Of a stretch of DNA of 64,000 bases, positions 6-42,484 are shown one piece after another. The first letter of the stretch is position 1, and each line of letters opens with the position of its first letter. The stretch lies in the IMG/VR virus record IMGVR_UViG_3300033182_000980, positions 62,001 to 126,000 of that record. One strand, given 5' to 3'. The notes below the pieces were generated by a model that was not told where the DNA came from, searched no databases, and saw only the letters and a list, made by a program, of their open reading frames with translations. The position numbers and the translations under genes are program-made.

Positions 6-1145
6 TTGGCTGGTCAAAAGACGCTAAAAGATGTGAGCGATACATTCAAGAAAAACAGTATCAGATCATTCAAAGCAATAGAAATCCACAAGAGCCAAGC
101 GTCTCTTAAATCGGTGATTCCCGTAGAGCTAAGGGCGTATTTACCCGACACAATCACGATTGATGTAGATGAAGAAGGGTACATCAAGAAGATTAACGAT
201 ATGTTCGGAAACAAGACCTACACTTTATCCGAAAAGATCAAGTCGCAGAAGAAGCTCATCAAAAAGTACAACACAATCGTTAAGCAGATTAAGAAGGATC
301 TCAAATCAAGAGATGAGAAGGCTAAACTCTCTGCAATCATCACTTCAATCATCATGGAAACAGGGATAAGGCCAGGAAAGATCGGTAATGGGATTGTAGA
401 AACAGTAGATGATCAAGAGGTGGAAGTTGAAACATTCGGAGCGATCACGCTGAACCCTTCCCATGTTAACTTTGTGAGGGAGAACTTTGCCGAGCTTAGT
501 TTCAGAGGAAAGATGGGGACTGTAAACACTGCGGCTATCTCTAACTCTGCAATCGTCAAAGTGCTGAAAGATTATGTAGACAATGCTCTTGAGTCTGGAT
601 CTGATTACATCTTCATCACAAGTGAGGGTGAACAGTTCACCTATCAAGACCTTGTGAGATACTTTAGGATTAACTTTAAGGGATTTAAGATCACTGACTT
701 TAGGAAGCTAAGAGCAACCCAAGAAGTTTTTGACGGACTCCAAGAAGAAAGAGACTCAATGCTTCGGAGGATTAAAGAAGTAGCAGAGCTTGAGACAGAG
801 GAGTTGACCCAGCGTGTTGTTGAGATCGTAGCCGAAACGATCAATAAAGCACACGAGAGAGCACAAGTGGCTTTGAGCCATGACAGTGGGTCTACCACTA
901 AGAAATCATACATTAACCCAGAAGTGCTTTTAAGGTTCTTGAGTACAGCTTCTATGCAAAGCACTCTTAAAGAGAGCATTACAACAGGTAAGACAAAGCT
1001 CCACTTTGATCCAATGATGTTTGTTCGAGAGGCAACTCGGACAGCAAGTATGCTTATTTCTGCATCTGGAAGAACGCTAGAGAGTATAGATACAATCGTT
1101 GATATGTTAGAGCATATTTTTGACAATGGTATAGTAGAAGGTTGA
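6..1145 (+). CDS. Type IB DNA topoisomerase (frame open to the window edge, may be 5'-truncated)
   Basis: Poxvirus/bacterial TopIB catalytic residues in order: ETGIRPG (R), FRGK (K), TDFRKLRAT (R), LSH (H), KKSYI (Y nucleophile); FGAITL resembles vaccinia YGLTTL. Confidence 0.85.
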   Translation: MAGQKTLKDVSDTFKKNSIRSFKAIEIHKSQASLKSVIPVELRAYLPDTITIDVDEEGYIKKINDMFGNKTYTLSEKIKSQKKLIKKYNTIVKQIKKDLKSRDEKAKLSAIITSIIMETGIRPGKIGNGIVETVDDQEVEVETFGAITLNPSHVNFVRENFAELSFRGKMGTVNTAAISNSAIVKVLKDYVDNALESGSDYIFITSEGEQFTYQDLVRYFRINFKGFKITDFRKLRATQEVFDGLQEERDSMLRRIKEVAELETEELTQRVVEIVAETINKAHERAQVALSHDSGSTTKKSYINPEVLLRFLSTASMQSTLKESITTGKTKLHFDPMMFVREATRTASMLISASGRTLESIDTIVDMLEHIFDNGIVEG

Positions 1146-1167
1146 AACCCTAAAAAGAGGATGTGTT

Positions 1168-1791
1168 ATGACTAACATTAATGGCATCAAGAACGACCAT
1201 AATAAACAAAGAGGCAAGAACACCTTTGGTGGAGGGAATGAAAAATCTCTTTACATCCCAATGTCGGACATTGAGCAAGAGTTCATTGCTCGTCTTGTTG
1301 AACAGGGAGAAATCTTGGTTGAGTTTCATGGTTGGGGTACGGTTCAGCCTATCGTGACCTTTGGAGATAAGATCATCCATGCTCACATTAAAGTCTTGTT
1401 CCATAATGCACCGCCTCCTCCTGGCAAACCTGTTCCGTTCTTTGACATGGAGCTTCGGACTCAATCGGGGATCTGTCTATACAGACAAAAGATGCCGACA
1501 TCTTATGGGAACACACCAATCACCATCTCTAATGAAGTTGAGCTAGAGATGGTTTGGGATATAGCTCTCAAATATATTGATCCGAAGCTCATCAAGACGC
1601 TCATGCCACAGGTTACAGGGTTCACAACAAGACTTGAAGATCGGGATACTCACGACATCACGGTGACTGGTAATATGAAGCTCAATAAAGAGCAGATTAA
1701 GTCAGCTCATAGCCTTCATCAGAGCGAACAGAACATCAAAGTATATGATGAGAAGAAGCTCGCAGAGGCGATCAATAAAACCTCAAAGTAA
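1168..1791 (+). CDS. Hypothetical phage protein
   Basis: 207-aa ORF with GAGG RBS; no recognised motif. Confidence 0.7.
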   Translation: MTNINGIKNDHNKQRGKNTFGGGNEKSLYIPMSDIEQEFIARLVEQGEILVEFHGWGTVQPIVTFGDKIIHAHIKVLFHNAPPPPGKPVPFFDMELRTQSGICLYRQKMPTSYGNTPITISNEVELEMVWDIALKYIDPKLIKTLMPQVTGFTTRLEDRDTHDITVTGNMKLNKEQIKSAHSLHQSEQNIKVYDEKKLAEAINKTSK

Positions 1792-2130
1792 GACTCTATA
1801 GGGGTGATTATCCCAGGGCACTTCCTTAGCCCCCTTGGGTAAATCAACTCGCACCCTCTTATTGACATCTAAAAAGTAAACGACCTTCTTGCTAGGTAGC
1901 ACTTCATAATAGCATCCACTTAGCTGGTAAAGTTTCCACTTTAGATTTCTCTTGGCGAATAGAACTAAGCTACTAGGGAATAACTCTTCTAGTAGGTAGC
2001 CTTTTTCATCTTCATATTCTTTGATGTGGTTGTAGGTCTTTGATAACCCATCTCTTTCTACATAGATTGTTTCGTTCTTGTAGACTATAAAGGTATCATT
2101 CTCTGCCTTGTAGTTTAGGACTGTTTTCAT
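1783..2130 (-). CDS. Hypothetical protein
   Basis: 115-aa ORF filling the gap between + strand genes. Confidence 0.6.
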   Translation of the reverse strand: MKTVLNYKAENDTFIVYKNETIYVERDGLSKTYNHIKEYEDEKGYLLEELFPSSLVLFAKRNLKWKLYQLSGCYYEVLPSKKVVYFLDVNKRVRVDLPKGAKEVPWDNHPYRVLL

Positions 2131-2141
2131 AGGAAGCTCGC

Positions 2142-2807
2142 ATGAAAGTATTGATTATTAGCACAACCACACATAGGGATAAATCAACTAGTAAAATGGT
2201 ATTGAGCCACTTGTCCGACATACTCAATAAAGACCACGACATCGACTTCGTAGACGCAAACGACCTACATATTGTCCCCAACCTAAGCTGTTATTCTAGT
2301 GGGGGTAAAAACTGTGCAAGTAAAGACGCTGGTAAGTACAGATGTTGGGCACACAAGTTGAGCCATGAGAACCCCGATGAGTATAATGGCAAAGACGAGA
2401 TGGGAATCCTTTATGATGCCCTAAGCTGGTGCGACTTAGTAATATGGGGAACTAGCGTTCGATGGGGTAGTCATTCAGCTTTGATGCAGAAGATCATCGA
2501 GCGTATGAACACCCTAGAAAACCAGCAGACGGTTTATGGGGAGGAGAACCCTTTGAAGGGCAAAAAATGTGGTGTGGTTGTAACTGGACAACATTATAAA
2601 GCTCAACAGGTTGCTGAACACCTCATCACACAGTTCGGGTGGTTTGGGTTTAATGTAGACCCCTCTTATATGTTGACTTGGCAGAAATCACAAGACATAC
2701 ACCAAGAGCAAGAAGGTGATAACAACGATCCTCTTGAGGCATACCTCAAGTCTAAAGAGGGCAAAGTACAGGTAGAGAACTTCCTATCAAGCATGGAGAT
2801 CAAATGA
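2142..2807 (+). CDS. Flavodoxin-like NAD(P)H-dependent FMN reductase / iron-sulfur flavoprotein family
   Basis: MKVLIISTT start, Cys cluster CYSSGGKNC...C, DLVIWGTSVRWG, LKGKKCGVVVTG flavodoxin-fold pattern. Confidence 0.75.
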   Translation: MKVLIISTTTHRDKSTSKMVLSHLSDILNKDHDIDFVDANDLHIVPNLSCYSSGGKNCASKDAGKYRCWAHKLSHENPDEYNGKDEMGILYDALSWCDLVIWGTSVRWGSHSALMQKIIERMNTLENQQTVYGEENPLKGKKCGVVVTGQHYKAQQVAEHLITQFGWFGFNVDPSYMLTWQKSQDIHQEQEGDNNDPLEAYLKSKEGKVQVENFLSSMEIK

Positions 2808-3670
2808 GAATCGAAACAGACTTTAAGCTCGACTTTAAAGATGTGCTGTTTAAACCTAAAAGGTCTACCCTCACATCACGCAAAGAGGTGAATCTCACAA
2901 GGTCAATCAAGCTACCCCACAGTAAAAGGACTTGGGAAGGTGTGCCTATTGCTGCCGCTAACATGGACACTGTGGCTACCTTTGAGGCTGGTAAAGTCCT
3001 CACAAATCATCACATGATGGTATGCCTTCACAAACATTACACCGAAGAACAGTATGTGGATATATACGACTGGGTGTATTCCAATCAAGGATGTGGCTAC
3101 GCTCAATACTGGGCTTACTCTATGGGTATCTCCGATGAAGAGTTTGATCGTCTTGTGCGTATTCAAGATAAGACCAATGGGATGATCCTCACGATCTGTA
3201 TTGATGTAGCGAACGGATACACAGAGCGTTTCATTAAGTTTGTCGCTAGGGTAAGGGAAAAGTATCCACTCTCAATCATCATCGCAGGTAATGTGGTCAC
3301 GGCAGAAATCACAGAGCAGTTGATCCTTGCTGGTGCAGACATCGTAAAGTGCGGAATTGGCTCTGGGTGTTTCGTTGCTGGCACACCTATCCTCACCAAT
3401 AATGGACTCAAGCCGATTGAGGAAGTTGAGGTAGGGGATAAGGTAATGACTCACATGGGTCGTGAGCGTACTGTGACGAACACCTTTACCCATACCAATA
3501 AGAACCTACTCGTTAATGTGAATGGCATCAAAGCAACACCAAACCATGAGTTCTATGTGGTACACAAGTCAGACGCTGATAAGGTGAATGACGATAACAT
3601 CCATGAGTACGCAAAGTGGGTTCGGGCTGATGAGCTGACTAAAGAACACTTACTACTAGAGGTTCAATAG
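2804..3670 (+). CDS. guaC: GMP reductase N-terminal half fused to split-intein N part
   Basis: N-terminus MRIETDFKLDFKDVLFKPKRSTL matches E. coli-type GuaC; IDVANGY, IAGNVVT, GADIVKCGIGSG, then the intein start CFVAGT; ends at a TAG stop. Confidence 0.92.
   Translation: MRIETDFKLDFKDVLFKPKRSTLTSRKEVNLTRSIKLPHSKRTWEGVPIAAANMDTVATFEAGKVLTNHHMMVCLHKHYTEEQYVDIYDWVYSNQGCGYAQYWAYSMGISDEEFDRLVRIQDKTNGMILTICIDVANGYTERFIKFVARVREKYPLSIIIAGNVVTAEITEQLILAGADIVKCGIGSGCFVAGTPILTNNGLKPIEEVEVGDKVMTHMGRERTVTNTFTHTNKNLLVNVNGIKATPNHEFYVVHKSDADKVNDDNIHEYAKWVRADELTKEHLLLEVQ
3368..3667 (+). mobile_element. Split intein N-fragment (IntN, 100 aa), IMPDH-1-like
   Basis: Block A CFVAGTPILT, GLKPIEEVEVGDKV, block B TPNHEFYV; ends EVQ-stop. 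Confidence 0.9.
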
Positions 3671-3679
3671 TTTATTTAT
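3668..3679 (+). promoter_or_regulatory. Motif A (TAGTTTnTTTAT), putative late promoter
   Basis: TAGTTTATTTAT; its TAG is the guaC-N stop; upstream of the endonuclease. Confidence 0.55.
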
Positions 3680-3722
3680 ATCTCTGATTATGATGAAACT
3701 AGGTATCGGTAGAGGTAGTGTC

Positions 3723-4667
3723 ATGCTCATCACAATCAGAAAAAATAATATGCTTGTCAAAGGCTTCTCCAAAGAGGGGCGATGCAACTATGCAATGCTT
3801 GAGGACGGTTCTAAGATACAGTCCTCAAAGCTAGGTAGTATCTCTATTGAGTGTTCAGAGTGTTCTAAGCAAAGCCACATACAATGGAGAACTGCCCTGT
3901 TAAGTAAGCCTTACTTATGCCAATCCTGTGTTGTTTCTGGAGATCGTAATGGGTTCTTTGGTAAGACACACACAGAGGAGACTAAGAAAGCCCACTCTGA
4001 CTTTATGTGTGGGAGATACACGGGTGAGGATAATGCTTTTTATGGCAAGACTCACACTAAAGAAGCGAGGGAAAAGATACGCTCGGCACAAACATGGCAA
4101 AAAGGATCATCTAATCCGTTCTTTGGTAAGACTCATTCGCCAGATACGATTGAAAAGATCATTGAGGGGAACAAAGCCTATCGGGAGTCTCTAACGGAGG
4201 AACAAAGAGCTAAAACCTCAAAAAAGTTGAGTCGTACTCAAAAGGATTTCCAAAAGAGCAACCCAAAATACTACAGGGAAATAAAGCAAAGGGGAGCATA
4301 CGCTTCGGCTAAGTCTCACAAGAAGTACAAGATGAACAAGCTAGAAGAAAAGGTTTATCAAGTGCTTCAAGATCACTTTACAGATATGTTCAAGTACACA
4401 GTCATCTTAGGTCATTTGCAGTTTGACTTTGGGTGTAAGAGTAAGCGTATCTTGATTGAGGTTCAAGGGGATTATTGGCATGGAAACCCTGCTCTCTATG
4501 GAGAGGGTAAAAGACCCTTGAACAACATACAGATCAACAAACAAGCTAAGGATAAGGTAAAACAATCATGGTGTGAGGACCATGACTTTACCCTACTCAC
4601 ATTTTGGGAAAGCGATATAAACGCAGACCCTAACATCATCTTAAGAGGAGTTTTAGATGTTATCTAA
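3723..4667 (+). CDS. Free-standing homing endonuclease: three NUMOD3 motifs plus C-terminal Vsr/DUF559-like nuclease
   Basis: [42 protein letters not shown]; FDF...[12 protein letters not shown]...WE. Start at 3723 chosen from the GAGGT RBS (ORF open from 3690). Confidence 0.85.
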
Positions 4668-4791
4668 GTACAAGCTAGTAGAAATCAATACCCTAGAGAC
4701 TGAGCCTAACCCATCGGGTATCGCCTATGACCTTGAGGTCGAGGAGGATCACTCATATACGATTGGGGAGAATAGGACTGTAGTTCATAAC
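4657..4791 (+). mobile_element. Split intein C-fragment (IntC, 45 aa)
   Basis: Block [13 protein letters not shown] and block G VVHN followed by a +1 Ser. Confidence 0.9.
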
Positions 4792-5286
4792 TCTGCTTGT
4801 ACGACTCGTATTCAAGCAGGTGTGGGTTATCCACAGTTAAGTGCTGTGATTGAGTGTGCCGATGCCGCTCATGGCTTGGGTGGTCGCATCATGTCGGATG
4901 GAGGCTGTACCTGTCCTGGTGATGTAGCTAAGGCATTTGGAGGAGGTGCTGATTTCGTCATGCTTGGGGGTATGCTTGCAGGACATACCGAGAACCTTAG
5001 ACTGGATGACGAGGGTAACGCACTCTTCTATGGTATGTCCTCTGACACAGCGATGGAGAAGTATCATGGAGGGGTTAATGACTATCGTTCATCCGAGGGA
5101 CGAACCGTAGCCATTGAGCGTAGAGGTCCGATTAAAGATACTCTTCAAGATATACTTGGGGGTATTAGATCAACCTGTACTTATATTGGAGCGAGTGAGC
5201 TTAGAGAGCTGAGTAAATGCACGACTTTTATTCGTGTTCGTCAGCAGTATAATCCAGTGTTTGAGTCTAAGACGATTAAGAGCTAA
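4657..5286 (+). CDS. guaC: Split-intein C part fused to GMP reductase C-terminal half
   Basis: Own RBS (AGAGGAG) and ATG; after VVHN comes SACTTR...[22 protein letters not shown]...[28 protein letters not shown], the canonical GuaC sequence. Confidence 0.92.
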
Positions 5287-5290
5287 GTTA

Positions 5291-5340
5291 TAGTTTATTT
5301 ATGTATTCCTCTGTAAGAACCTTATCTTTACAGAGGAATA
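5291..5340 (+). promoter_or_regulatory. Motif A plus RBS-sequestering hairpin
   Basis: TAGTTTATTTAT 5291-5302; perfect 13-bp inverted repeat 5304-5316/5328-5340 containing the GAGGA RBS. Confidence 0.65.
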
Positions 5341-5344
5341 CATC

Positions 5345-5938
5345 ATGTATCTAAAGAGAGCATTACTTAACCTTGAGCGTAGGGTTGCTGATCTTGAAGC
5401 TGACCTTCAGCCTCAACTTGGTAAACCTGGTGGAGTCAAGCACACAACACAGCGTATTGACGAAGCCTTACCCGACGGGAGCCCGAAAGAAATCGAGCTG
5501 ATAGATACAGTCAATAAGGGTCAAGGGATCTCTAATCAAGACGCAAGGATTGTGTATCGCTTTGACGACTGTAATCCAGCTCTTGACGGAACGACTATGG
5601 TTAAGGGTTTTTGTGTCTCTTCTCATGGTCAGTTTAGAATGGACCAAAGAGGGATTACAGTTCGCAAGATCCAAGAGTTCTTCTTTAATCTGGAGAAGTA
5701 CCTAGAAAGGAATGAGACTAATCGGAGGACTTTCGACTTGCGAGACTCAATCAATAGAGGAATGGAAACCAAGTGGACAGATGAGCGTAGTAACAATCTC
5801 ACAGTAGTCTTTAGACTTGAGGGAGACAGTGCCAAGATCATCACTACTTATTACAAGAATAAGAAAGACCCGATCTTGACCGAGGAGAAAGACTACTCAC
5901 GCTTTATTCGACCTAGAGGTCGTAGACGAAGGCGTTAG
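5345..5938 (+). CDS. Putative BECR/DUF4258-like RNase-fold protein with a divergent coiled-coil leader
   Basis: N-terminal LLNLERRVADLEA resembles the leader; C-terminal SSHGQFRMDQRGIT...VVFRL...KIITTYY resembles the DUF4258 pattern. Confidence 0.45.
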   Translation: MYLKRALLNLERRVADLEADLQPQLGKPGGVKHTTQRIDEALPDGSPKEIELIDTVNKGQGISNQDARIVYRFDDCNPALDGTTMVKGFCVSSHGQFRMDQRGITVRKIQEFFFNLEKYLERNETNRRTFDLRDSINRGMETKWTDERSNNLTVVFRLEGDSAKIITTYYKNKKDPILTEEKDYSRFIRPRGRRRRR

Positions 5939-6342
5939 TAAGCACCTGCTATGTGTTCGATTTCTTCTTCGACCTTCATAGCAAGCATATACCAACGCTC
6001 TGCAAGGTCTTGGTAGTAGGGGTCTTTGCCTCTACTGAAAGAGGGCATCTTTTCAAGCTCACGCTCCATTTCTTGCATAGCCTTTAAGACTTTTTCTGCT
6101 GACCTACGAACAGGCGTAGAAGCTGTTCTCTGCTTGCTCTTGTACTCATTCGTGAGCCGATACTCTTTTACGAGAGCTTCATATTCTTTGTTCTGCGATG
6201 GGGTAAGACGATCTTGGTCTTCAAGGAGTTGAAGCTCATCTAACCTTGCTCTATCTTTTTTAGACATAGTGCGAGCTTGTCTCTCAAGGCGAGCAATACG
6301 ACCCTCAAGTTCACGAATTATTTCTGAAGCTGATCTTCTCAT
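5935..6342 (-). CDS. MRRSASE-leader protein 1 (unknown cargo)
   Basis: MRRSASEIIRELEGRIARLERQA; GGAGAA RBS. Confidence 0.85.
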   Translation of the reverse strand: MRRSASEIIRELEGRIARLERQARTMSKKDRARLDELQLLEDQDRLTPSQNKEYEALVKEYRLTNEYKSKQRTASTPVRRSAEKVLKAMQEMERELEKMPSFSRGKDPYYQDLAERWYMLAMKVEEEIEHIAGAY

Positions 6343-6386
6343 AGTTTGTTCTCCATTTGGTTAATATGACCACCAATGAAAAACCT

Positions 6387-6398
6387 ATAAAAGACCTA
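6387..6398 (-). promoter_or_regulatory. Motif A variant
   Basis: TAGGTCTTTTAT upstream of leader protein 1. Confidence 0.45.
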
Positions 6399-6401
6399 CA
6401 A

Positions 6402-6455
6402 ATAAAAAATGTCTCTTAAACACCCTCTGTGGCTTAGTGAGGGGTCTAAGAGACA
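6402..6455 (-). terminator. Intrinsic terminator downstream of the SSB-like gene
   Basis: Inverted repeat TGTCTCTTA (6410-6418)/TAAGAGACA (6447-6455) with inner CCCTC/GAGGG, followed by a T-run on the minus strand. Confidence 0.6.
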
Positions 6456-6528
6456 TAGAGCCTTTAGTTGAATCAAAGGCTATTGAGCGTATTCAACCAT
6501 GACTTAAGTCATGGGTCAAGGCTTTTTC

Positions 6529-7245
6529 TTAGAGCATACCGTCAAGGATCTCATCTGCATCAAAGCTAGAGTTGAAACCACCACCGCTGTTGCCTGTAGG
6601 CGAACCAACCGAACCACTCATCTTCTCACGAATCTGATCGAGAGTAAGGTCTTGAGCGATGTCATTTTGGATGTTTGCGTGGATAGGCTTAGCCGCTTCC
6701 ATACAAGTATTGAACATATCAGAACCCTTGTCGCTCAAGGTCTTGAACAGAGACTCTTTACAAGGAGCGAAAGTCATCTTGTGGAACTGTGGATCAGTCA
6801 CGGTGATTGAGATGTCATGCTGACTCAAAGGGAACTCGGAGTTGATAGACTCAAGCTGACGATACTTATCGAGTGAGAACACCCAAGTCTTGACCTCAAA
6901 CTCACCATTGGCGAAGCGAGCCTTATCAAGCGTACCATTAGCGTCTGTCGGCCAGAAGATGAGAGTAGTAGCGATTGAGGTCTTTGAGGGATTACCCGCG
7001 ATCTTCTGATACTCTGGACCATGATCGAGGAAGTATCCGACATCCTTGTGATAGAGGCGGCGACCACCCTTGAACGAGGGGTTGGTCGGATTACCATTTG
7101 CGTCCTCGAACTGAACAGCGTTGTCCTCAAGACCTGGAAGAGCCACGAAAGTCACACGAAACTTTCCCTTTTGTGGCTTCCAACGAACCTTACCACCTGA
7201 GAGGATTGGTGAAGTAGAACCGAGTGTGAAGTCTGAAAAACCCAT
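6529..7245 (-). CDS. Putative phage single-stranded DNA-binding protein
   Basis: Beta-rich core with aromatic residues, Gly/Ser linker and acidic C-terminal tail FDADEILDGML typical of phage SSBs. Confidence 0.5.
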   Translation of the reverse strand: MGFSDFTLGSTSPILSGGKVRWKPQKGKFRVTFVALPGLEDNAVQFEDANGNPTNPSFKGGRRLYHKDVGYFLDHGPEYQKIAGNPSKTSIATTLIFWPTDANGTLDKARFANGEFEVKTWVFSLDKYRQLESINSEFPLSQHDISITVTDPQFHKMTFAPCKESLFKTLSDKGSDMFNTCMEAAKPIHANIQNDIAQDLTLDQIREKMSGSVGSPTGNSGGGFNSSFDADEILDGML

Positions 7246-7425
7246 AGGGCATTCTCCTGTATATATTGCCTGTCGGCAGTTAAAGTTAAGAGCGTTAGCG
7301 AGTCATCCGAAGTGAGTGGCTCTGTTGCTCACATACTCTTATACGATATACACAAGATGTTGCCGAACTTTTCCCAAAAAACTTTCAGAGAAATAGTAAG
7401 TGCCCGAAAGAGTTGAAGAAAAACC

Positions 7426-9027
7426 TCACTTAATCTTTGGTCGGGTGTCGCATCTCTGCCTTAGAAGGTAAAGATTTGTCTCGTGTGTGTTCGCCATAGA
7501 CATGATAAAGTCGTCCATACCTAATGTAAGGCCACCCTGCTCTTTAAGCATATCATAAGCGTTCTTAAAGATGACCTGTAGGCCCTCTTCAATCAATAAA
7601 GCTCTGCGTATCGGGTCATTCATGCTGTGAGCTTCGGCTAGAGGTAAGAGGTGGTTAGCCATGAGCTGTGCTTGTTCAACAGCATTAACAGCCTCTACCC
7701 CATATGTGCCGACAATCTTTTCAGCCAGTGTGTCGATTTCTTCAATAAGAGATGTGTAAATCCTCTCCATCAGCTCATGATCACCGTAGAAGCTTGATCC
7801 TTTAACCTGCCAATGGCTCGTCCAGTGTGCAAAGTGAGCACCACGAAGAACAGCTAAGAGCATTTGAAGTATGGCGAGGTTATCTGTCCGATCACAGGTG
7901 CTCGCTCTTTTGTTGTATCTCATAAGTTCTTTCTTAGCGTTCATGGCTTCCCTTGCATCATAAAACACGATCATCTCCGAGTGATTACCAGCTATACGAT
8001 AGAAATCTTCTTTGCGACCAATGAGATCTCTACGAGCTTGAGCAATAGACACTACCTCAACATCTTTGAGCTTAACAGGCTTATCCCAAATGACCTCCTC
8101 AACAAAGCCCTTTTTAGGCTTGGTGCTGGTCTTGAACTTTAAAGCCACCATCTCCTTAGCTCTGCTTTTCTTACCCCCACTCATCTGAACGGAGTAGACA
8201 TCCCAACCCCACACACCAGAGATCGCATATACACCACCAGCACTAGGTGCGTCATCATCCATGATGTGATTAGGTCTAAGATAGCCGTCTGCGATGATGT
8301 CATCTACTCGGTTCGCATAGGTGTAGTGATAGAAGAAATCTTTAGAGAGGTTAATGTGGTAGTAATACTTGCTAAAAGCATTGGATCCGTACTCTTCAAG
8401 TTCTTCATCATCAAGCTCACCACCCTCGTGATAAATCAGTTTTAGATCACGCAAAGAGGCTTGTTTATCTATGTGTCTCTTAGCTGGAGCATCTCTCTCA
8501 TCTAGGGTGAACTCTCTCCAAGCATCTTGGGGGTCTTCTTCTAAGACAGCGTAAGATCCTTCAATCAGATCGAAGAACATTTCCATGTCCTCTCTATCGT
8601 ACCACTCGACCCGATCTAAGAAATCGTTGAGGTCTACTACGATAGCCGTCTCACCTTCGACATAGATGTTAATGGCATCAAACATCTCGGACAGAGACAT
8701 GAGGTAAGCTGGCTTACCCTCGTAAACGAACTCTAGCTCGAATGGGAGGGAATACCCTATAGAGCCTCGTTTGTGCTTCTTGTAGTATTTCTTACGATAG
8801 TCTTGGCGATTCTTTCTATAGTTGGGATCAGTTCTCATTTTCTTCCTATGCTTCTTTCTGTTTTTTCGTCTTTGGACTAGATTAGTATTTCTCTTGCGTA
8901 AGTTTTTTGTCCTAGTCCTCATACGCCTTCTGCGTTTGATCTTAGGATTAGTCCTACGCTTAGTGCCAGCCTGTAGCTCTTCAGCAAAGAGGTCATCTGC
9001 AAGTATTTCGGCTAAGAAATCACTCAT
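7426..9027 (-). CDS. Multidomain protein: basic N-region, ADP-ribosyltransferase-fold-like domain, Dps/ferritin-like C-terminal domain
   Basis: Start at 9027 (overlaps upstream stop). FYHYT....IIADGYLRP is ART-like; AHFAHWTSHWQVKGSSFYGDHELMERIY...EIDTLAEK matches the Dps ferroxidase motif. Confidence 0.65.
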   Translation of the reverse strand: MSDFLAEILADDLFAEELQAGTKRRTNPKIKRRRRMRTRTKNLRKRNTNLVQRRKNRKKHRKKMRTDPNYRKNRQDYRKKYYKKHKRGSIGYSLPFELEFVYEGKPAYLMSLSEMFDAINIYVEGETAIVVDLNDFLDRVEWYDREDMEMFFDLIEGSYAVLEEDPQDAWREFTLDERDAPAKRHIDKQASLRDLKLIYHEGGELDDEELEEYGSNAFSKYYYHINLSKDFFYHYTYANRVDDIIADGYLRPNHIMDDDAPSAGGVYAISGVWGWDVYSVQMSGGKKSRAKEMVALKFKTSTKPKKGFVEEVIWDKPVKLKDVEVVSIAQARRDLIGRKEDFYRIAGNHSEMIVFYDAREAMNAKKELMRYNKRASTCDRTDNLAILQMLLAVLRGAHFAHWTSHWQVKGSSFYGDHELMERIYTSLIEEIDTLAEKIVGTYGVEAVNAVEQAQLMANHLLPLAEAHSMNDPIRRALLIEEGLQVIFKNAYDMLKEQGGLTLGMDDFIMSMANTHETNLYLLRQRCDTRPKIK

Positions 9028-10276
9028 GGTCAGCCTTCTTTCTCCGTTTTTCGGCTCGTTGGTTCTTCTGTTTAATGGTAGAGACACCACCGCCTGGTCT
9101 ACGCTTGTACTTCTCAGGGTTCTTAGCATAGTTTTTCTTGTACTTCTTGTAAGTAGGGTTATGTTTCTTACGCTTGTAGAGTCTCTTCTGCTTCAGAAGA
9201 TTTCTACGATATTTAACCCGATACCTACGCTTGTACTTTTGAGACTGGCGTTTGGCTTGCCCCTTTTGTTTCCTCTGTCGCTTATTTCCTTTAGGTGGGC
9301 GATAGTTGTATCGGAACAAAGCGACTTTGATGAGGTCATCTCCGTCTATATCCCAATACTCGAAATCTTCAACAGAACCCATGACCCTACGCTTTAGGCC
9401 GGTTGAAGTGGATTGGTCTATATGAGGGTTTCCATACTGATCGCCTGGAATACCACTTGATCTCGGACGCTCATGGAGGGCTTTTCCATCGGGATGATCG
9501 TTTAATGCACTTGGGTCTTTCTTTGGACGATTCGCTCCACCTTGACCACTAGAGTCGGGAGGTGAGTTAATAACTCCTGGACCAACTCTTTGTTCGTCAC
9601 GACCTTCTGGATGTCCACTAGGTAAAGGAAGAACTCGATCTCTTTGAGGCTTACCGTCTTCATAATCTTCTCTTGATTTCTGTGGTGATGAAGTGTCGTT
9701 ATTGATTTGGTCTTGTCGGGTTTTATCGACCCATGTTTTGACACCTGCTAAGTCTTGTGCCGGTTGAGCCGCTGACTGTAGATAGCGAAGGGCTACCCTA
9801 CTAGCAGACGCTTTCTTCTTCTCTGTGATCTCTTTAGCTTCTTCACTGAAAGTCGGAGTATTAACAGGCTTCTTCCCACGATGTTTCGCTTCTTCACGCC
9901 TTTTCTTTTTGGCAAGCTCGGCTCGGTCTTCTTTAGACATTCCCCATGCCTTCTCTCGTGGCATACACTTGAGGGGTTTTTTGCCCCCACTTGTAACATC
10001 TGACCACTCTTTTTCACTAGATATGGCACATGGGCCAACAATGTCTCCTGGTTCATAGGTCTTGTCCTCTCCATCTTCTTTTTTGATCGTGTGTTTTACA
10101 GGTGTTATAGCAATCCAATCGCCCCATGTAGCACGATCATCGGGATCTCCACCACCATGTCCTGCAAACCAAGTACCTAACCCACCCTTACCAGTGTTCT
10201 TTTTTTTGGGGTCATCACGCTTTACGGACTCTAAATAGCGTTCAGCAACCTTTTCGATAAGACTTTTATTTTTCAT
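9020..10276 (-). CDS. Hypothetical basic multidomain protein with RVA-type motifs
   Basis: MKNKSLIEKVAERYLES; KGGLGTWF; SRVALRYLQSA; very K/R-rich C-terminus. Start inferred from GAGGT spacing. Confidence 0.75.
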   Translation of the reverse strand: MKNKSLIEKVAERYLESVKRDDPKKKNTGKGGLGTWFAGHGGGDPDDRATWGDWIAITPVKHTIKKEDGEDKTYEPGDIVGPCAISSEKEWSDVTSGGKKPLKCMPREKAWGMSKEDRAELAKKKRREEAKHRGKKPVNTPTFSEEAKEITEKKKASASRVALRYLQSAAQPAQDLAGVKTWVDKTRQDQINNDTSSPQKSREDYEDGKPQRDRVLPLPSGHPEGRDEQRVGPGVINSPPDSSGQGGANRPKKDPSALNDHPDGKALHERPRSSGIPGDQYGNPHIDQSTSTGLKRRVMGSVEDFEYWDIDGDDLIKVALFRYNYRPPKGNKRQRKQKGQAKRQSQKYKRRYRVKYRRNLLKQKRLYKRKKHNPTYKKYKKNYAKNPEKYKRRPGGGVSTIKQKNQRAEKRRKKADHE

Positions 10277-32286: not shown

Positions 32287-33375
32287 ATGGCTAAAGGCTA
32301 TTATGTTTATCGTCAGTTCAACAAGAGGACAGGCGAGTATTACATCGGCAAGGGTACTTACTCTGATCGAGATCCCGATGGGAGTAAGTACAAAGGCTCT
32401 GGTATCTTGCTCTTGCGTAAAATGAACGCTCACCCAAATGACTTTGAGAAAGAAATCTTAAAGGATTTCGAGAGCGAAGAGGACGCTTACGCTTATGAGG
32501 CAGAGCTTGTGGGTGAGAGGTATATCGGTGGTGCAGACCATGACCCACTTTGTTTGAACATGAACAGTGGAGGCATGGGTTCGTCCTCTAATGCTTTGAA
32601 GCATTATTACTCTAACCCTATCGTGAAGATGGAGATGAGTGAGAGGATGAAAACCTTATGGGAAGATGAGGATTATCGGGAGAAAGTTCTAGCTTCAAGG
32701 GAGGGTGAAGCTAGAGAGAGGTGGCACGAGTCTCATCAAAAGGCTCTTAAAGACCCAGAGGTGAGAGCGAGAATAAAGGAGGGGGCAAACAATCCTCACA
32801 AAAAGAAATCAGTGCGAGAGGCACAGATTAAAATGAAACCGATCAATGTCGAGAAAGACGGAGTGGAGATTGAGATCCCTAGAGGAGAGTTAGCCGATTA
32901 CTTTAGGTTGGGTTGGTCGCTTTGCTCTAAGGGTGTTGTGAACATTCACCATATGGACATTGGGATATATAGCTGTGGTCAGCATGATGTGGTGAAGCAT
33001 CTTGTGTTGGAGCATGGATTCAAGTTTGGAACTCACTATGACTTAGAGCGGGTTAACTATGATGTGATCTCTAAGTTAGCGGGTGTTCGGGAGGCCAAGT
33101 CTAAGGGTCAGATGGGGAATTGGTCTTTGAAGCCTGTGAAGCTGATTAACTTAGAGGGTGAGGTAGAGCTTGTGCCCCGTGATGTTTACTTGGACAAGTT
33201 AGAGGAGGGCTATACCTTTAAGAGTGCGAATGTGATAATAAGAAACCACACGCTCAAGCAGACTTGCGTCTTAGGCAAGGGTAGAGCGAGGAGGGTCTTG
33301 CTAGAAAGGGGAGGTTGGGAGCTTGGTAGCAAGCGAGGTTATGAGGCAGTGAGTACCAAGTCTCTTGATTTGTAG
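32287..33375 (+). CDS. Free-standing GIY-YIG (Seg-like) homing endonuclease
   Basis: YYVY...TGEYYIGKG, YKGSG, AYAYEAEL, CLN; located downstream of nrdB. Confidence 0.8.
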   Translation: MAKGYYVYRQFNKRTGEYYIGKGTYSDRDPDGSKYKGSGILLLRKMNAHPNDFEKEILKDFESEEDAYAYEAELVGERYIGGADHDPLCLNMNSGGMGSSSNALKHYYSNPIVKMEMSERMKTLWEDEDYREKVLASREGEARERWHESHQKALKDPEVRARIKEGANNPHKKKSVREAQIKMKPINVEKDGVEIEIPRGELADYFRLGWSLCSKGVVNIHHMDIGIYSCGQHDVVKHLVLEHGFKFGTHYDLERVNYDVISKLAGVREAKSKGQMGNWSLKPVKLINLEGEVELVPRDVYLDKLEEGYTFKSANVIIRNHTLKQTCVLGKGRARRVLLERGGWELGSKRGYEAVSTKSLDL

Positions 33376-41294: not shown

Positions 41295-42484
41295 ACGAAG
41301 ATAGTATCTTCTCTATCTGCACCCGTTGAAATGATCGACACTGGACAAACCTTCTCGCTTATATAACCAACATAAGCCTTTAGGTTCGCATGGAGGAATG
41401 AGTAGTCTTGAACACCCGCTGTATTATCCCAGCCGTCAAAGACTTCCATGCCCCCCTTCAATCCAATCTTTACCTCGCTAAACCCATCGAGGACATCAAC
41501 CTTGGTGAGAGCGAGTGAGGTAAAGCCATTTAGGATTTGAGCTTCCCGAAGCATTGGTAGCGAGTTCCAACCACAGCGTCTAGCCCGACCTGTGACTACT
41601 CCAAACTCACCCCCTTGAGTCCTTAGACGCTCACCAAGTTCACCTGTGTCCTCTAACCCAAATGGTCCAGCACCAACTCGTGTGCAATAGGCTTTCACTA
41701 CCCCAATGATTTCTGCATCACGAGGTAAGGCACAGCCAATACCTGCACTAATGCCTCCTGCAATCGTAGTAGAACTTGTTACGAATGGGTATGTGCCATG
41801 TGAGATGTCGAGGAATGTACCTTGAGCACCCTCAATGATGATCTTATTTGCTCCACCATTCATGGCTTCATGGAGCTTCACAGACAGGTTGTCATAGATG
41901 AATGGTATCCAGTTATTTCTCCACTTGTTCAACTTGGACATGATTTGCTCCTGTACAAGAGGAGCTGATAAACCGCCATGAGCCATAGCGATGAGCTTGG
42001 TTTTCTCTGCCCATGTCTTTGGGTCGAGTAGATCACCGACTCTTAAACCAATGCGTCTGGCTTTATCTTCATAGCAGACACCGATACCGTTGCGAGTTGT
42101 TCCGATACGATTGTCAGATTTCTCTTCACGAGCTGTATCTACCTCAATGTGGATAGGGAGGATGAGATGAGCACGATGGTCGATGAGAACCCTCTTACTT
42201 GCTTCCTCATAACCAACCATTTTACAGAGCATATCGAACTCACCTTGGAGAACATCAAGGTTGATCGCCATACCAGCTCCGAGTACACCCTTTGCTCCTC
42301 TTAGGACACCAGAGGGGAGGAGTCGGAGCTTGTATGTCTCCCCACCAAAGATGATGGTATGCCCAGCGTTGCTTCCCCCTTGAAAACGGATGCAGTAGTC
42401 AGCGTTGCCCGACAAGAAATCAACGATCTTGCCTTTACCCTCATCACCCCATTGAGCACCGATTACAGCTATGACTTGAGTCAT
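41291..42484 (-). CDS. purA: Adenylosuccinate synthetase
   Basis: QWGDEGKGK, RFQGGSNAGHT, EGAQG, GTYPFVTSS, GEFGVVTGRARRCGW, LTKVDVLDG. Confidence 0.95.
   Translation of the reverse strand: MTQVIAVIGAQWGDEGKGKIVDFLSGNADYCIRFQGGSNAGHTIIFGGETYKLRLLPSGVLRGAKGVLGAGMAINLDVLQGEFDMLCKMVGYEEASKRVLIDHRAHLILPIHIEVDTAREEKSDNRIGTTRNGIGVCYEDKARRIGLRVGDLLDPKTWAEKTKLIAMAHGGLSAPLVQEQIMSKLNKWRNNWIPFIYDNLSVKLHEAMNGGANKIIIEGAQGTFLDISHGTYPFVTSSTTIAGGISAGIGCALPRDAEIIGVVKAYCTRVGAGPFGLEDTGELGERLRTQGGEFGVVTGRARRCGWNSLPMLREAQILNGFTSLALTKVDVLDGFSEVKIGLKGGMEVFDGWDNTAGVQDYSFLHANLKAYVGYISEKVCPVSIISTGADREDTIFV

Follow-up and report, generated by a model that had tools for sequence, protein, structure and literature searches.

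A fractured GMP reductase gene with a predicted split intein and a putatively mobile EDxHD endonuclease gene in a marine jumbo phage genome

Introduction

How can a gene that is broken in two by an endonuclease gene still yield its enzyme, and by what route does such a break arise? Both questions are raised by the guanosine monophosphate (GMP) reductase locus, guaC, at positions 2804-5286 of a 64,000-nucleotide stretch (the window) that comprises bases 62001-126000 of one 375,691-bp virus record, IMGVR_UViG_3300033182_000980, estimated to be complete. Three open reading frames (ORFs) on the same (+) strand fill this interval: the guaC N-half, an endonuclease gene and the guaC C-half. The locus is real, and its sequence indicates that it is most likely functional; overall, we consider it very probable that this is a functional 'fractured' guaC in a 375.7-kb marine jumbo phage genome, the halves of which would be joined by protein trans-splicing and are separated by a mobile endonuclease gene of the EDxHD family.

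The fractured-gene arrangement was defined by Dassa et al. in 2009 (PMC2677866). An initial annotation of the window had placed the locus in this class, and our analysis agreed with that definition, including the overlap of the endonuclease 3' end with the downstream half. The arrangement itself has been known since 2009 and the family is abundant in public metagenomes; the new result is a comparative series of alleles. Runs holding the locus were derived from marine, estuary, seawater and aquatic metagenomes, and no near-identical DNA was found among GenBank phages.

Gene organization and split intein

At the sequence level the locus had the features of a fractured gene, of a class 1 split intein in the IMPDH-1 allelic family, of an EDxHD endonuclease and of GuaC (Table 1). 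GuaC was interrupted at GIGSG|SACTT, where the initial annotation had put the split, and Cys48 of the C-half, the catalytic Cys at NF003470 position 186, lies two residues past the splice site. The N-terminal intein fragment (IntN) begins with Cys1 (TGT 3368-3370) directly after GIGSG, carries the block B motif TPNH at its residues 57-60 and ends at the TAG at 3668-3670; the Hint_2 match begins at residue 189 of the N-half. The C-terminal fragment (IntC) ends in VVHN followed by Ser46 (Ser+1) and matched the intein_Cterm model TIGR01443 with 22.3 bits against a cut-off of 15.6. The 100-aa IntN with its stop codon and the 45-aa IntC with its own ribosome-binding site (RBS) and HN-Ser end had both been described initially, and both were recovered here. 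The halves are separately translatable, owing to the stop codon after IntN and the RBS and ATG of IntC, and this layout is common to 52 related clusters.

The guaC halves would accordingly be translated as separate proteins; their IntN and IntC parts are predicted to come together as a HINT fold and to trans-splice. In the expected chemistry Cys1 would attack the upstream peptide bond, Ser+1 would take part in trans-esterification and Asn45 would cyclise, releasing a GuaC of 352 aa in which the native junction, GIGSG-SACTTR, lies two residues ahead of the catalytic Cys. The uninterrupted alleles P0067 and P0074 read GIGSGS(A/V)CTTR at this place, so that precise excision and ligation of the window halves would produce the same junction as that of natural intein-less alleles.

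Table 1. Features of the guaC locus in window coordinates.
Feature	Position	Strand	Description
N-half ORF	2804-3670	+	288 aa: GuaC residues 1-188, then IntN 189-288
GuaC N-extein	2804-3367	+	188 codons; NF003470 positions 1-188, 229.9 bits; Pfam IMPDH
Entire insertion element (intein plus endonuclease gene)	3368-4791	+	1424 bp
IntN	3368-3670	+	100 codons; Cys1, TPNH, TAG 3668-3670; Hint_2 and Hom_end_hint matches
Endonuclease gene	3690-4667	+	maximal ORF 325 aa; likely start ATG 3723, giving 314 aa
C-half ORF	4657-5286	+	209 aa: IntC, then GuaC C-extein
IntC	4657-4791	+	45 codons, end VVHN; TIGR01443 intein_Cterm
GuaC C-extein	4792-5286	+	164 codons plus stop, start Ser+1-Ala-Cys; NF003470 positions 183-346, 272.7 bits
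Mosaic block	3579-4704	+	IntN tail (~30 codons), endonuclease cassette, first ~16 IntC codons
12-mer motif copy TAGTTTATTTAT	3668-3679	+	overlaps IntN stop, directly upstream of endonuclease gene; promoter-like
Shine-Dalgarno AAGAGGAG	4643-4650	+	inside endonuclease 3' end, 6 nt ahead of C-half ATG 4657
Upstream FMN-reductase/flavodoxin-like gene	2142-2807	+	stop overlaps guaC N-half ATG (ATGA, 2804-2807)
Second motif copy and hairpin	5291-5343	+	motif 5291-5302, hairpin 5301-5343; context, outside element

An IntN-restricted search identified 57 proteins (clustered at 90%) with an IntN at the same site, after GIGxG, which is between 46% and 97% identical to that of the window; two further IntN matches, P0058 (53%) and P0059 (44%), lacked the scripted GIGxG-Cys junction. 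The split form accounted for 52 of these 57 sampled proteins, and the rarity of the system that was implied initially did not survive a count of at least 52 split-form clusters (90% identity) in public metagenomes. Identities to IMPDH-1 were counted by eye against the sequence obtained by optical character recognition from PMC7090010 Suppl. file 1, and amounted to ~50 of 100 IntN and ~21 of 45 IntC residues. A close resemblance to IMPDH-1 had been proposed; the shared family and insertion site were upheld, whereas identities of only ~50% (IntN) and ~47% (IntC) do not amount to closeness. As judged by these comparisons, the window intein adds a member to a large metagenomic family, the same allelic family as IMPDH-1, and is not a near copy of IMPDH-1.

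Structure prediction was consistent with a working pair of fragments. With IntN plus 5 extein residues and IntC plus 7 as inputs, the interface score ipSAE was 0.79 in three runs, in comparison to 0.00 for the best of 3 controls, and at least 91% of contacts were common to the runs, with a partner predicted local distance difference test score (pLDDT) of at least 79. The mark applied to ipSAE was attained by 51 of 78 solved complexes and by 2 of 108 mismatched pairs. As solved structures include many inteins, the prediction is to be read as likeness to a working split intein and not as proof of binding, and the predictor may have reached the mark in part through solved inteins that it had learned. 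The model of a contiguous relative's intein (pLDDT 76) had the HINT fold, and its top 36 PDB matches were all inteins, BIL or hedgehog domains, including gp41-1, NrdJ-1 and Npu DnaE. By sequence, IntN matched only a BIL domain in the PDB at E 3e-6, together with weak matches to gp41-1 and PI-SceI. To our knowledge, no IMPDH-1 structure exists for comparison.

GuaC exteins and selective constraint

Both halves matched the GMP reductase equivalog NF003470, their scores adding up roughly to more than the cut-off of 397 bits, and the initial assignment of the extein to GMP reductase was thereby confirmed. The intein-less relative P0067 (352 aa, 96% identical to the window C-extein) scored 520.3 bits and the contiguous-intein relative P0008 scored 493.8 bits on the same model. 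The exteins of the more distant intein-family members P0012 and P0045 scored best as IMP (inosine monophosphate)-dehydrogenase-like proteins without a CBS domain, which accounts for the historical name IMPDH. The protein-level phage matches, in Xoo-sp13, RAS14, XacN1 and Cr30, were to ordinary intein-less GMP reductases, and their seeming overlap with the intein was alignment spill-over. At window 3350-3352 the N-extein reads VKCGIGSG in place of the VKVGIGxG of P0002-P0011 (Val is also found in most other family members), a variant that introduces an extra Cys six residues ahead of the splice site.

The ratio of non-synonymous to synonymous divergence (pN/pS) was 0.0-0.13 for the intein parts and 0.04-0.13 for IntN, and all parts of the locus are under purifying selection. 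This bears on the proposition that the endonuclease insertion killed the gene and that the two halves are decaying and no longer splice, which would be conceivable for a phage auxiliary metabolic gene, as such genes can be dispensable. We judge decay to be very unlikely. Both halves are intact over the full profile and have all splicing residues, pN/pS lies at 0.04-0.19 for exteins and intein parts, the split layout is kept in relatives of 44-97% IntN identity, and the prediction of the IntN-IntC complex was positive.

The intervening endonuclease

The presence of a NUMOD3/Vsr-like endonuclease between the halves had been noted initially, and the ORF at 3690-4667 indeed gave three NUMOD3 matches (Pfam, E 9e-16) and a DUF559/Vsr-like match (E 4e-7). 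An exhaustive HMMER search returned 4741 representative homologues, 103 of them at E<=1e-30. Full-length homologues align from Met12 and GAGG precedes this codon, which makes ATG 3723 the likely start. The protein consists of an N-terminal Cys4 zinc ribbon, the three NUMOD3 motifs and a C-terminal EDxHD/Vsr-like nuclease domain (~4386-4664). Among 40 homologues C44, D235, W252, H253, D277 and K280 (numbered from Met12) were invariant, while C47, C66 and C69, which complete the four-Cys zinc-ribbon pattern, and E246 and D250 were at least 90% conserved; the E/D/H/D residues correspond to the set of the EDxHD family known from I-Bth0305I (PMC3239194).

The AlphaFold2 model of the endonuclease (pLDDT 93.8) had the I-Bth0305I catalytic domain (3r3p, TMt 0.73-0.75) as its best PDB match, followed by Vsr (1cw0). 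A phmmer search of PDB sequences gave no meaningful match, and kinship with 3r3p and Vsr was visible by fold only. Between the window and L013 copies pN/pS was 0.26, which indicates that the gene is under purifying selection. On conserved residues and predicted fold, the enzyme is best classified in the EDxHD family as of the I-Bth0305I type, a more precise placement than NUMOD3/Vsr-like.

Group I introns are among the places where EDxHD endonucleases are found, one case being recA of phage 0305phi8-36 (PMC3239194), and the insert could in principle be a group I/II intron that bears the endonuclease ORF and is spliced out to restore a contiguous intein. Such an intron had been named beforehand as the finding that would speak against a fractured gene. 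An Rfam scan of 2500-5600 returned no group I/II intron match at E<=1, its sole match being a chance, miRNA-like one on the terminator-like hairpin 5291-5361. Furthermore, the IntN stop and the IntC RBS and ATG are kept family-wide, the insert flanks differ from the contiguous allele, so there was no clean insertion, and the 5' region is without significant structure. An intron is consequently the least credible of the explanations considered, to the point of being almost negligible.

Allelic states in two phage lineages

Two lineages, A and B, were told apart by exteins and synteny, and all three allelic states (intein-less, contiguous mini-intein, and split with endonuclease) were found in both of them. 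The split allele of lineage A is that of the window; its contiguous allele, found at L010 and L011 with P0008, is a 494-aa GuaC with a mini-intein and shares the flanking 219-aa and 197-aa genes with the window, and its intein-less allele, at L015 and L016 with P0067, is syntenic with window 1126 to 10000. Lineage B is marked by purB-purA-guaC synteny, and its three states were represented by a split allele with a 325-aa endonuclease ORF (L013 with P0004), a contiguous allele on a 211-kb contig (L012 with P0010) and an intein-less allele on contigs of up to 312 kb (P0074).

L015 aligned to window 1126-3368 and 4792-5279 and the two blocks abutted at L015 position 4565, showing that the 1424-bp element is precisely absent from L015. 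Relative to L010, window 3641-4674 (1034 bp) was replaced by 36 bp. The window IntN stretch was 82-87% identical to its contiguous counterparts, with intein residues 1-70 identical to P0008, and the contiguous linkers APSFD and APGFG contain neither Met nor endonuclease remnant. In a further comparison, that of P0038/L014 (4001-5515) with the split L020 (3001-5361), 848 bp were replaced by 34 bp; the IntC Met survives in the P0038 linker, as do short stretches matching the endonuclease 5' untranslated region (UTR) and 3' end, and P0038 therefore looks like the outcome of endonuclease loss followed by re-fusion.

Mosaic structure and proposed homing of the cassette

A four-way alignment of the split and contiguous alleles of both lineages revealed a mosaic. 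Inside 3579-4704, 28 informative sites followed endonuclease presence or absence (window = L013, L010 = L012) and 3 followed the lineage, whereas outside this block ~190 informative sites followed the lineage (window = L010, L013 = L012) and 10 the endonuclease pattern. The lineage pattern extended over the two exteins, roughly the first 140 nt of IntN and the part of IntC that starts at 4698, and sliding identity and the synonymous divergence (pS) of each segment agreed with the block.

Between the window and L013, pS was 0.74 for the N-extein, 0.62 for the C-extein and 0.91 for the last 29 codons of IntC, in comparison to 0.23 for IntN codons 1-70, 0.34 for IntN codons 71-100, 0.22 for the endonuclease gene and 0.39 for IntC codons 1-16. 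The exteins of the two split-allele lineages are near synonymous saturation, and the low pS of the cassette relative to that of the exteins indicates that cassette and short flanks were exchanged between lineages well after the exteins diverged. Within lineages the IntN tail was the most divergent segment (0.94 for window against L010, 0.73 for L013 against L012), and the contiguous tails of L010 and L012 differed by an extein-like 0.77. The last 29 IntC codons, at 0.91 across lineages, differed by 0.16-0.26 within them, while IntN codons 1-70 differed by 0.12-0.32 across lineages, far below the exteins.

Taken together, these comparisons identify the shared block 3579-4704 as the footprint of homing or gene conversion, its breakpoints falling within the intein (left 3507-3579, right 4688-4710), the trace to be expected if a free-standing endonuclease homes into an endonuclease-free mini-intein allele. 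The cassette would be a mobile unit seated at the usual endonuclease-insertion point of a mini-intein, and would most likely spread by cutting endonuclease-free alleles, after which recombinational repair would copy it in together with short co-conversion tracts. Co-conversion tracts of varying length would also be expected to leave intermediate IntN tails, as were seen in P0009 and P0011. Since the breakpoints are internal to the intein, the contiguous mini-intein allele is the favoured target, with the cut placed near the cassette position. A more far-reaching account, which we hold tentatively and with a little less than even confidence, is that the EDxHD cassette moves between phage lineages by targeting mini-intein coding sequence and converts cis- to trans-splicing, that occasional loss of the cassette re-fuses the gene, and that this cycle is reversible and ongoing, with all of its states extant.

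Alternatively, the endonuclease may target the intein-less guaC site GIGSG|SACTT, in which case intein and endonuclease would move as one 1.4-kb unit and mini-inteins would be by-products. The precise absence of the element from the syntenic L015 would fit this, as would IntN codons 1-70, which are much more alike across lineages than the exteins, as if the intein itself had moved; moreover, I-Bth0305I cuts an uninterrupted host gene (PMC3239194). Movement as a single unit is nevertheless a doubtful explanation of the present alleles, because the breakpoints of the shared block fall inside the intein and because the last 29 IntC codons and the intein-adjacent extein sites 3358, 4794 and 4796 all follow lineage. 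The low divergence of IntN codons 1-70 in all four alleles does suggest that movement of the whole intein also happened earlier.

The cycle could likewise have run in the opposite direction, with the split form as the ancestral state that the window retains and with the contiguous P0008-P0011 produced by endonuclease loss and in-frame re-fusion. An IntN tree (70 columns, poorly resolved, and not permitting the direction to be rooted) nested contiguous forms within split ones at two or more points, and the split state was that of 52 of 57 family members; P0038/L014, with the IntC Met and endonuclease-flank matches in its linker, looks like a re-fusion of the kind required, and the window IntN tail is nearer to the family consensus than the contiguous tail. 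Against this, the linkers APSFD and APGFG lack both Met and endonuclease remnant, independent deletions would not yield one alternative tail in both lineages, and the contiguous tails differ across lineages by an extein-like pS of 0.77 but the split tails and endonuclease gene by only 0.22-0.34, so that the cassette was shared more recently. We consider an ancestral split form possible but on balance unlikely for these alleles. Both directions, invasion as well as loss with re-fusion, evidently occur, and invasion by the cassette is favoured for the window clade because the cassette was more recently shared and the contiguous linkers contain no remnant of it.

Several observations weigh against the overall interpretation as a functional fractured guaC with a mobile cassette. 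Given that 52 of 57 members are split family-wide and that P0038 looks re-fused, the contiguous state near the window may be a derived one and not the ancestor. The patch segments of the mosaic are short (16-30 codons) and their pS values noisy, and a search of the contiguous alleles for a pseudopalindromic target where the cassette would insert gave nothing convincing. Four metagenome runs with the split form gave no endonuclease-skipping joint, so that no co-occurrence of states within one sample was seen; contigs of these runs bridged both element boundaries, and the high depth at 4740-4993 was due to conserved guaC of other organisms. Lastly, an RNA hairpin was described in the endonuclease 5' UTR of 15 of 16 fractured loci (PMC2677866), and the corresponding hairpin here (3683-3740, enclosing RBS and ATG 3723) was no better than shuffled sequences (z -0.93).

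Expression signals

The endonuclease stop codon at 4665-4667 gives an 11-nt overlap with the C-half ORF (4657-4667), within the range of 6-69 bp reported for endonuclease/downstream-half overlaps in 15 fractured loci (PMC2677866). In the proposed arrangement the endonuclease gene would be expressed from a promoter-like motif and an RBS of its own, and the C-half would take its RBS and start codon from the 3' end of that gene.

With one mismatch allowed, the motif TAGTTTATTTAT was present in the window in 13 copies (2179, 3668, 5291, 12213, 16055, 19555, 33373, 33861, 42504, 43773, 45294, 48870 and 57026), where 0.36 would be expected, and 11 of these copies are on the + strand. Copies were mostly intergenic and located 30-50 nt upstream of a same-strand RBS and ATG, and the 12-mer is probably the phage promoter consensus. 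The copy upstream of the endonuclease gene is kept in the second split allele, L013, and absent from the contiguous allele; it would represent a promoter-like element borne by the cassette and could also drive the C-half. A scan of 2000-6000 for sigma-70 promoters and intrinsic terminators gave results at or below chance, with none at the element.

Downstream of guaC, the hairpin 5301-5343 (-25.1 kcal/mol, z -5.2) buries the RBS of the next gene, and by-eye reading found a strong hairpin with the next gene's RBS in its 3' arm after the motifs at 33373, 33861 and 43773 as well. A hairpin after the motif looks like translational control by RBS sequestration.

Comparison with known systems

The characterized relative IMPDH-1 trans-splices experimentally, quickly and orthogonally (PMC11168065; see also PMC7090010). 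Both inteins occupy the same site of the IMPDH/GMPR fold, after GIGxG and before S-x-C-T-T, both consist of an IntN of ~100 aa and an IntC of 40-45 aa with Cys1, a terminal HN and Ser+1, and both have a Vsr-like endonuclease gene between the halves that overlaps the downstream half. They differ in IntC length (45 aa in the window, 40 aa in IMPDH-1) and in the junction, which is GSG/SAC in the window and natively GGG/SIC in IMPDH-1 (PMC7090010). In addition, the window extein is recognised by the GMP-reductase (GuaC type 1) model, and the window locus lies in a complete 375.7-kb phage genome, while IMPDH-1, from the Global Ocean Sampling (GOS) metagenome, is on read assemblies. The inteins gp41-1, NrdJ-1 and Npu DnaE share the canonical split point, the HINT fold and class 1 chemistry with the window intein but are unrelated in exteins and sequence, and the two halves of DnaE lie apart in the genome and do not flank an endonuclease gene.

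I-Bth0305I (PDB 3R3P) and the window enzyme have in common a C-terminal Vsr-like nuclease fold, the E/D/H/D residues and N-terminal DNA-binding modules. The window enzyme is free-standing inside a split intein and has three NUMOD3 motifs and a Cys4 zinc ribbon, whereas I-Bth0305I is intron-encoded and has two NUMOD2/helix-turn-helix repeats; identity between the catalytic domains is ~20%. Collaborative or intronless homing by free-standing phage endonucleases is exemplified by F-CphI with the psbA intron, by the Seg and Mob enzymes of T4 and by mobE of Aeh1, which splits nrdA. Passages of PMC2677866 and PMC6083498 mention this type of homing. The window cassette resembles these cases in being a free-standing endonuclease gene beside or inside a self-splicing element or gene, with its own expression signals, and in its presumed spread by double-strand-break repair with flank co-conversion. 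It differs in that the landing pad would be a mini-intein and the damage would be mended at the protein level by trans-splicing. Cleavage by I-Bth0305I is confined to the uninterrupted allele, beside its own insertion site (PMC3239194).

In the literature covered, which was incomplete, we found no description of a phage GMP-reductase intein beyond the 2009 IMPDH loci, nor of triplets of empty, mini-intein and fractured alleles for IMPDH loci. The gene-breaking model of Dassa et al. had been proposed in 2009 without a 'before' state in hand, and the two-lineage allele series, with breakpoints mapped to tens of bases, provides observational support for its step II. The natural alleles are also defined substrates with which both this model and the endonuclease target become directly testable. 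For intein engineering, the locus contributes a natural member of the fast IMPDH-1 family, possibly orthogonal to IMPDH-1 itself given that it is ~50% diverged, together with natural contiguous (cis-splicing) counterparts. This pairing permits a matched comparison of cis- and trans-splicing and the tracing of tail residues that adapt a mini-intein to two fragments.

Neighbouring genes and other elements

The FMN-reductase/flavodoxin-like gene at 2142-2807 (+) is translationally coupled to the guaC N-half through the ATGA overlap. The same phage carries purA at window ~41300-42469 on the minus strand, and purB, purA and guaC are clustered in relatives, a gene set that suggests a phage-encoded route from GMP to IMP to adenosine monophosphate. 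At window 6-1145 (+), a 379-aa ORF matched the eukaryotic/poxvirus-type topoisomerase IB catalytic core (Pfam Topoisom_I, E 9e-13).

A second fractured gene was observed in the same genome outside the window, at ~135,660-137,910 of G000:C1 (L019 1663-3906, minus strand). Its 166-aa N-half ends in a very short IntN of ~33 aa (CLAGEELV...), the middle ORF is a 291-aa TnsA-like (PD-ExK) nuclease, and the first ~130 aa of the 294-aa C-half are an IntC that ends in VVHN|C; the split point is atypical and recalls the terminase exception of Dassa et al. Adjoining it at L019 212-1489 (minus) is a 425-aa ORF rich in NP(F/A)-type repeats, with an E..G..WH motif at its C-terminus; this ORF looks like another free-standing Vsr/EDxHD-like endonuclease that was missed by the DUF559 scan. 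Two intein C-terminal motifs at G000:C1 ~4,600-5,810 (minus) lie in one open frame of 1362 aa, pointing to a large protein with two contiguous inteins and to a phage rich in inteins. A ribosomal protein S21 homologue (PF01165) was found at 2127-2366 of L020, a phage-like contig with another fractured guaC.

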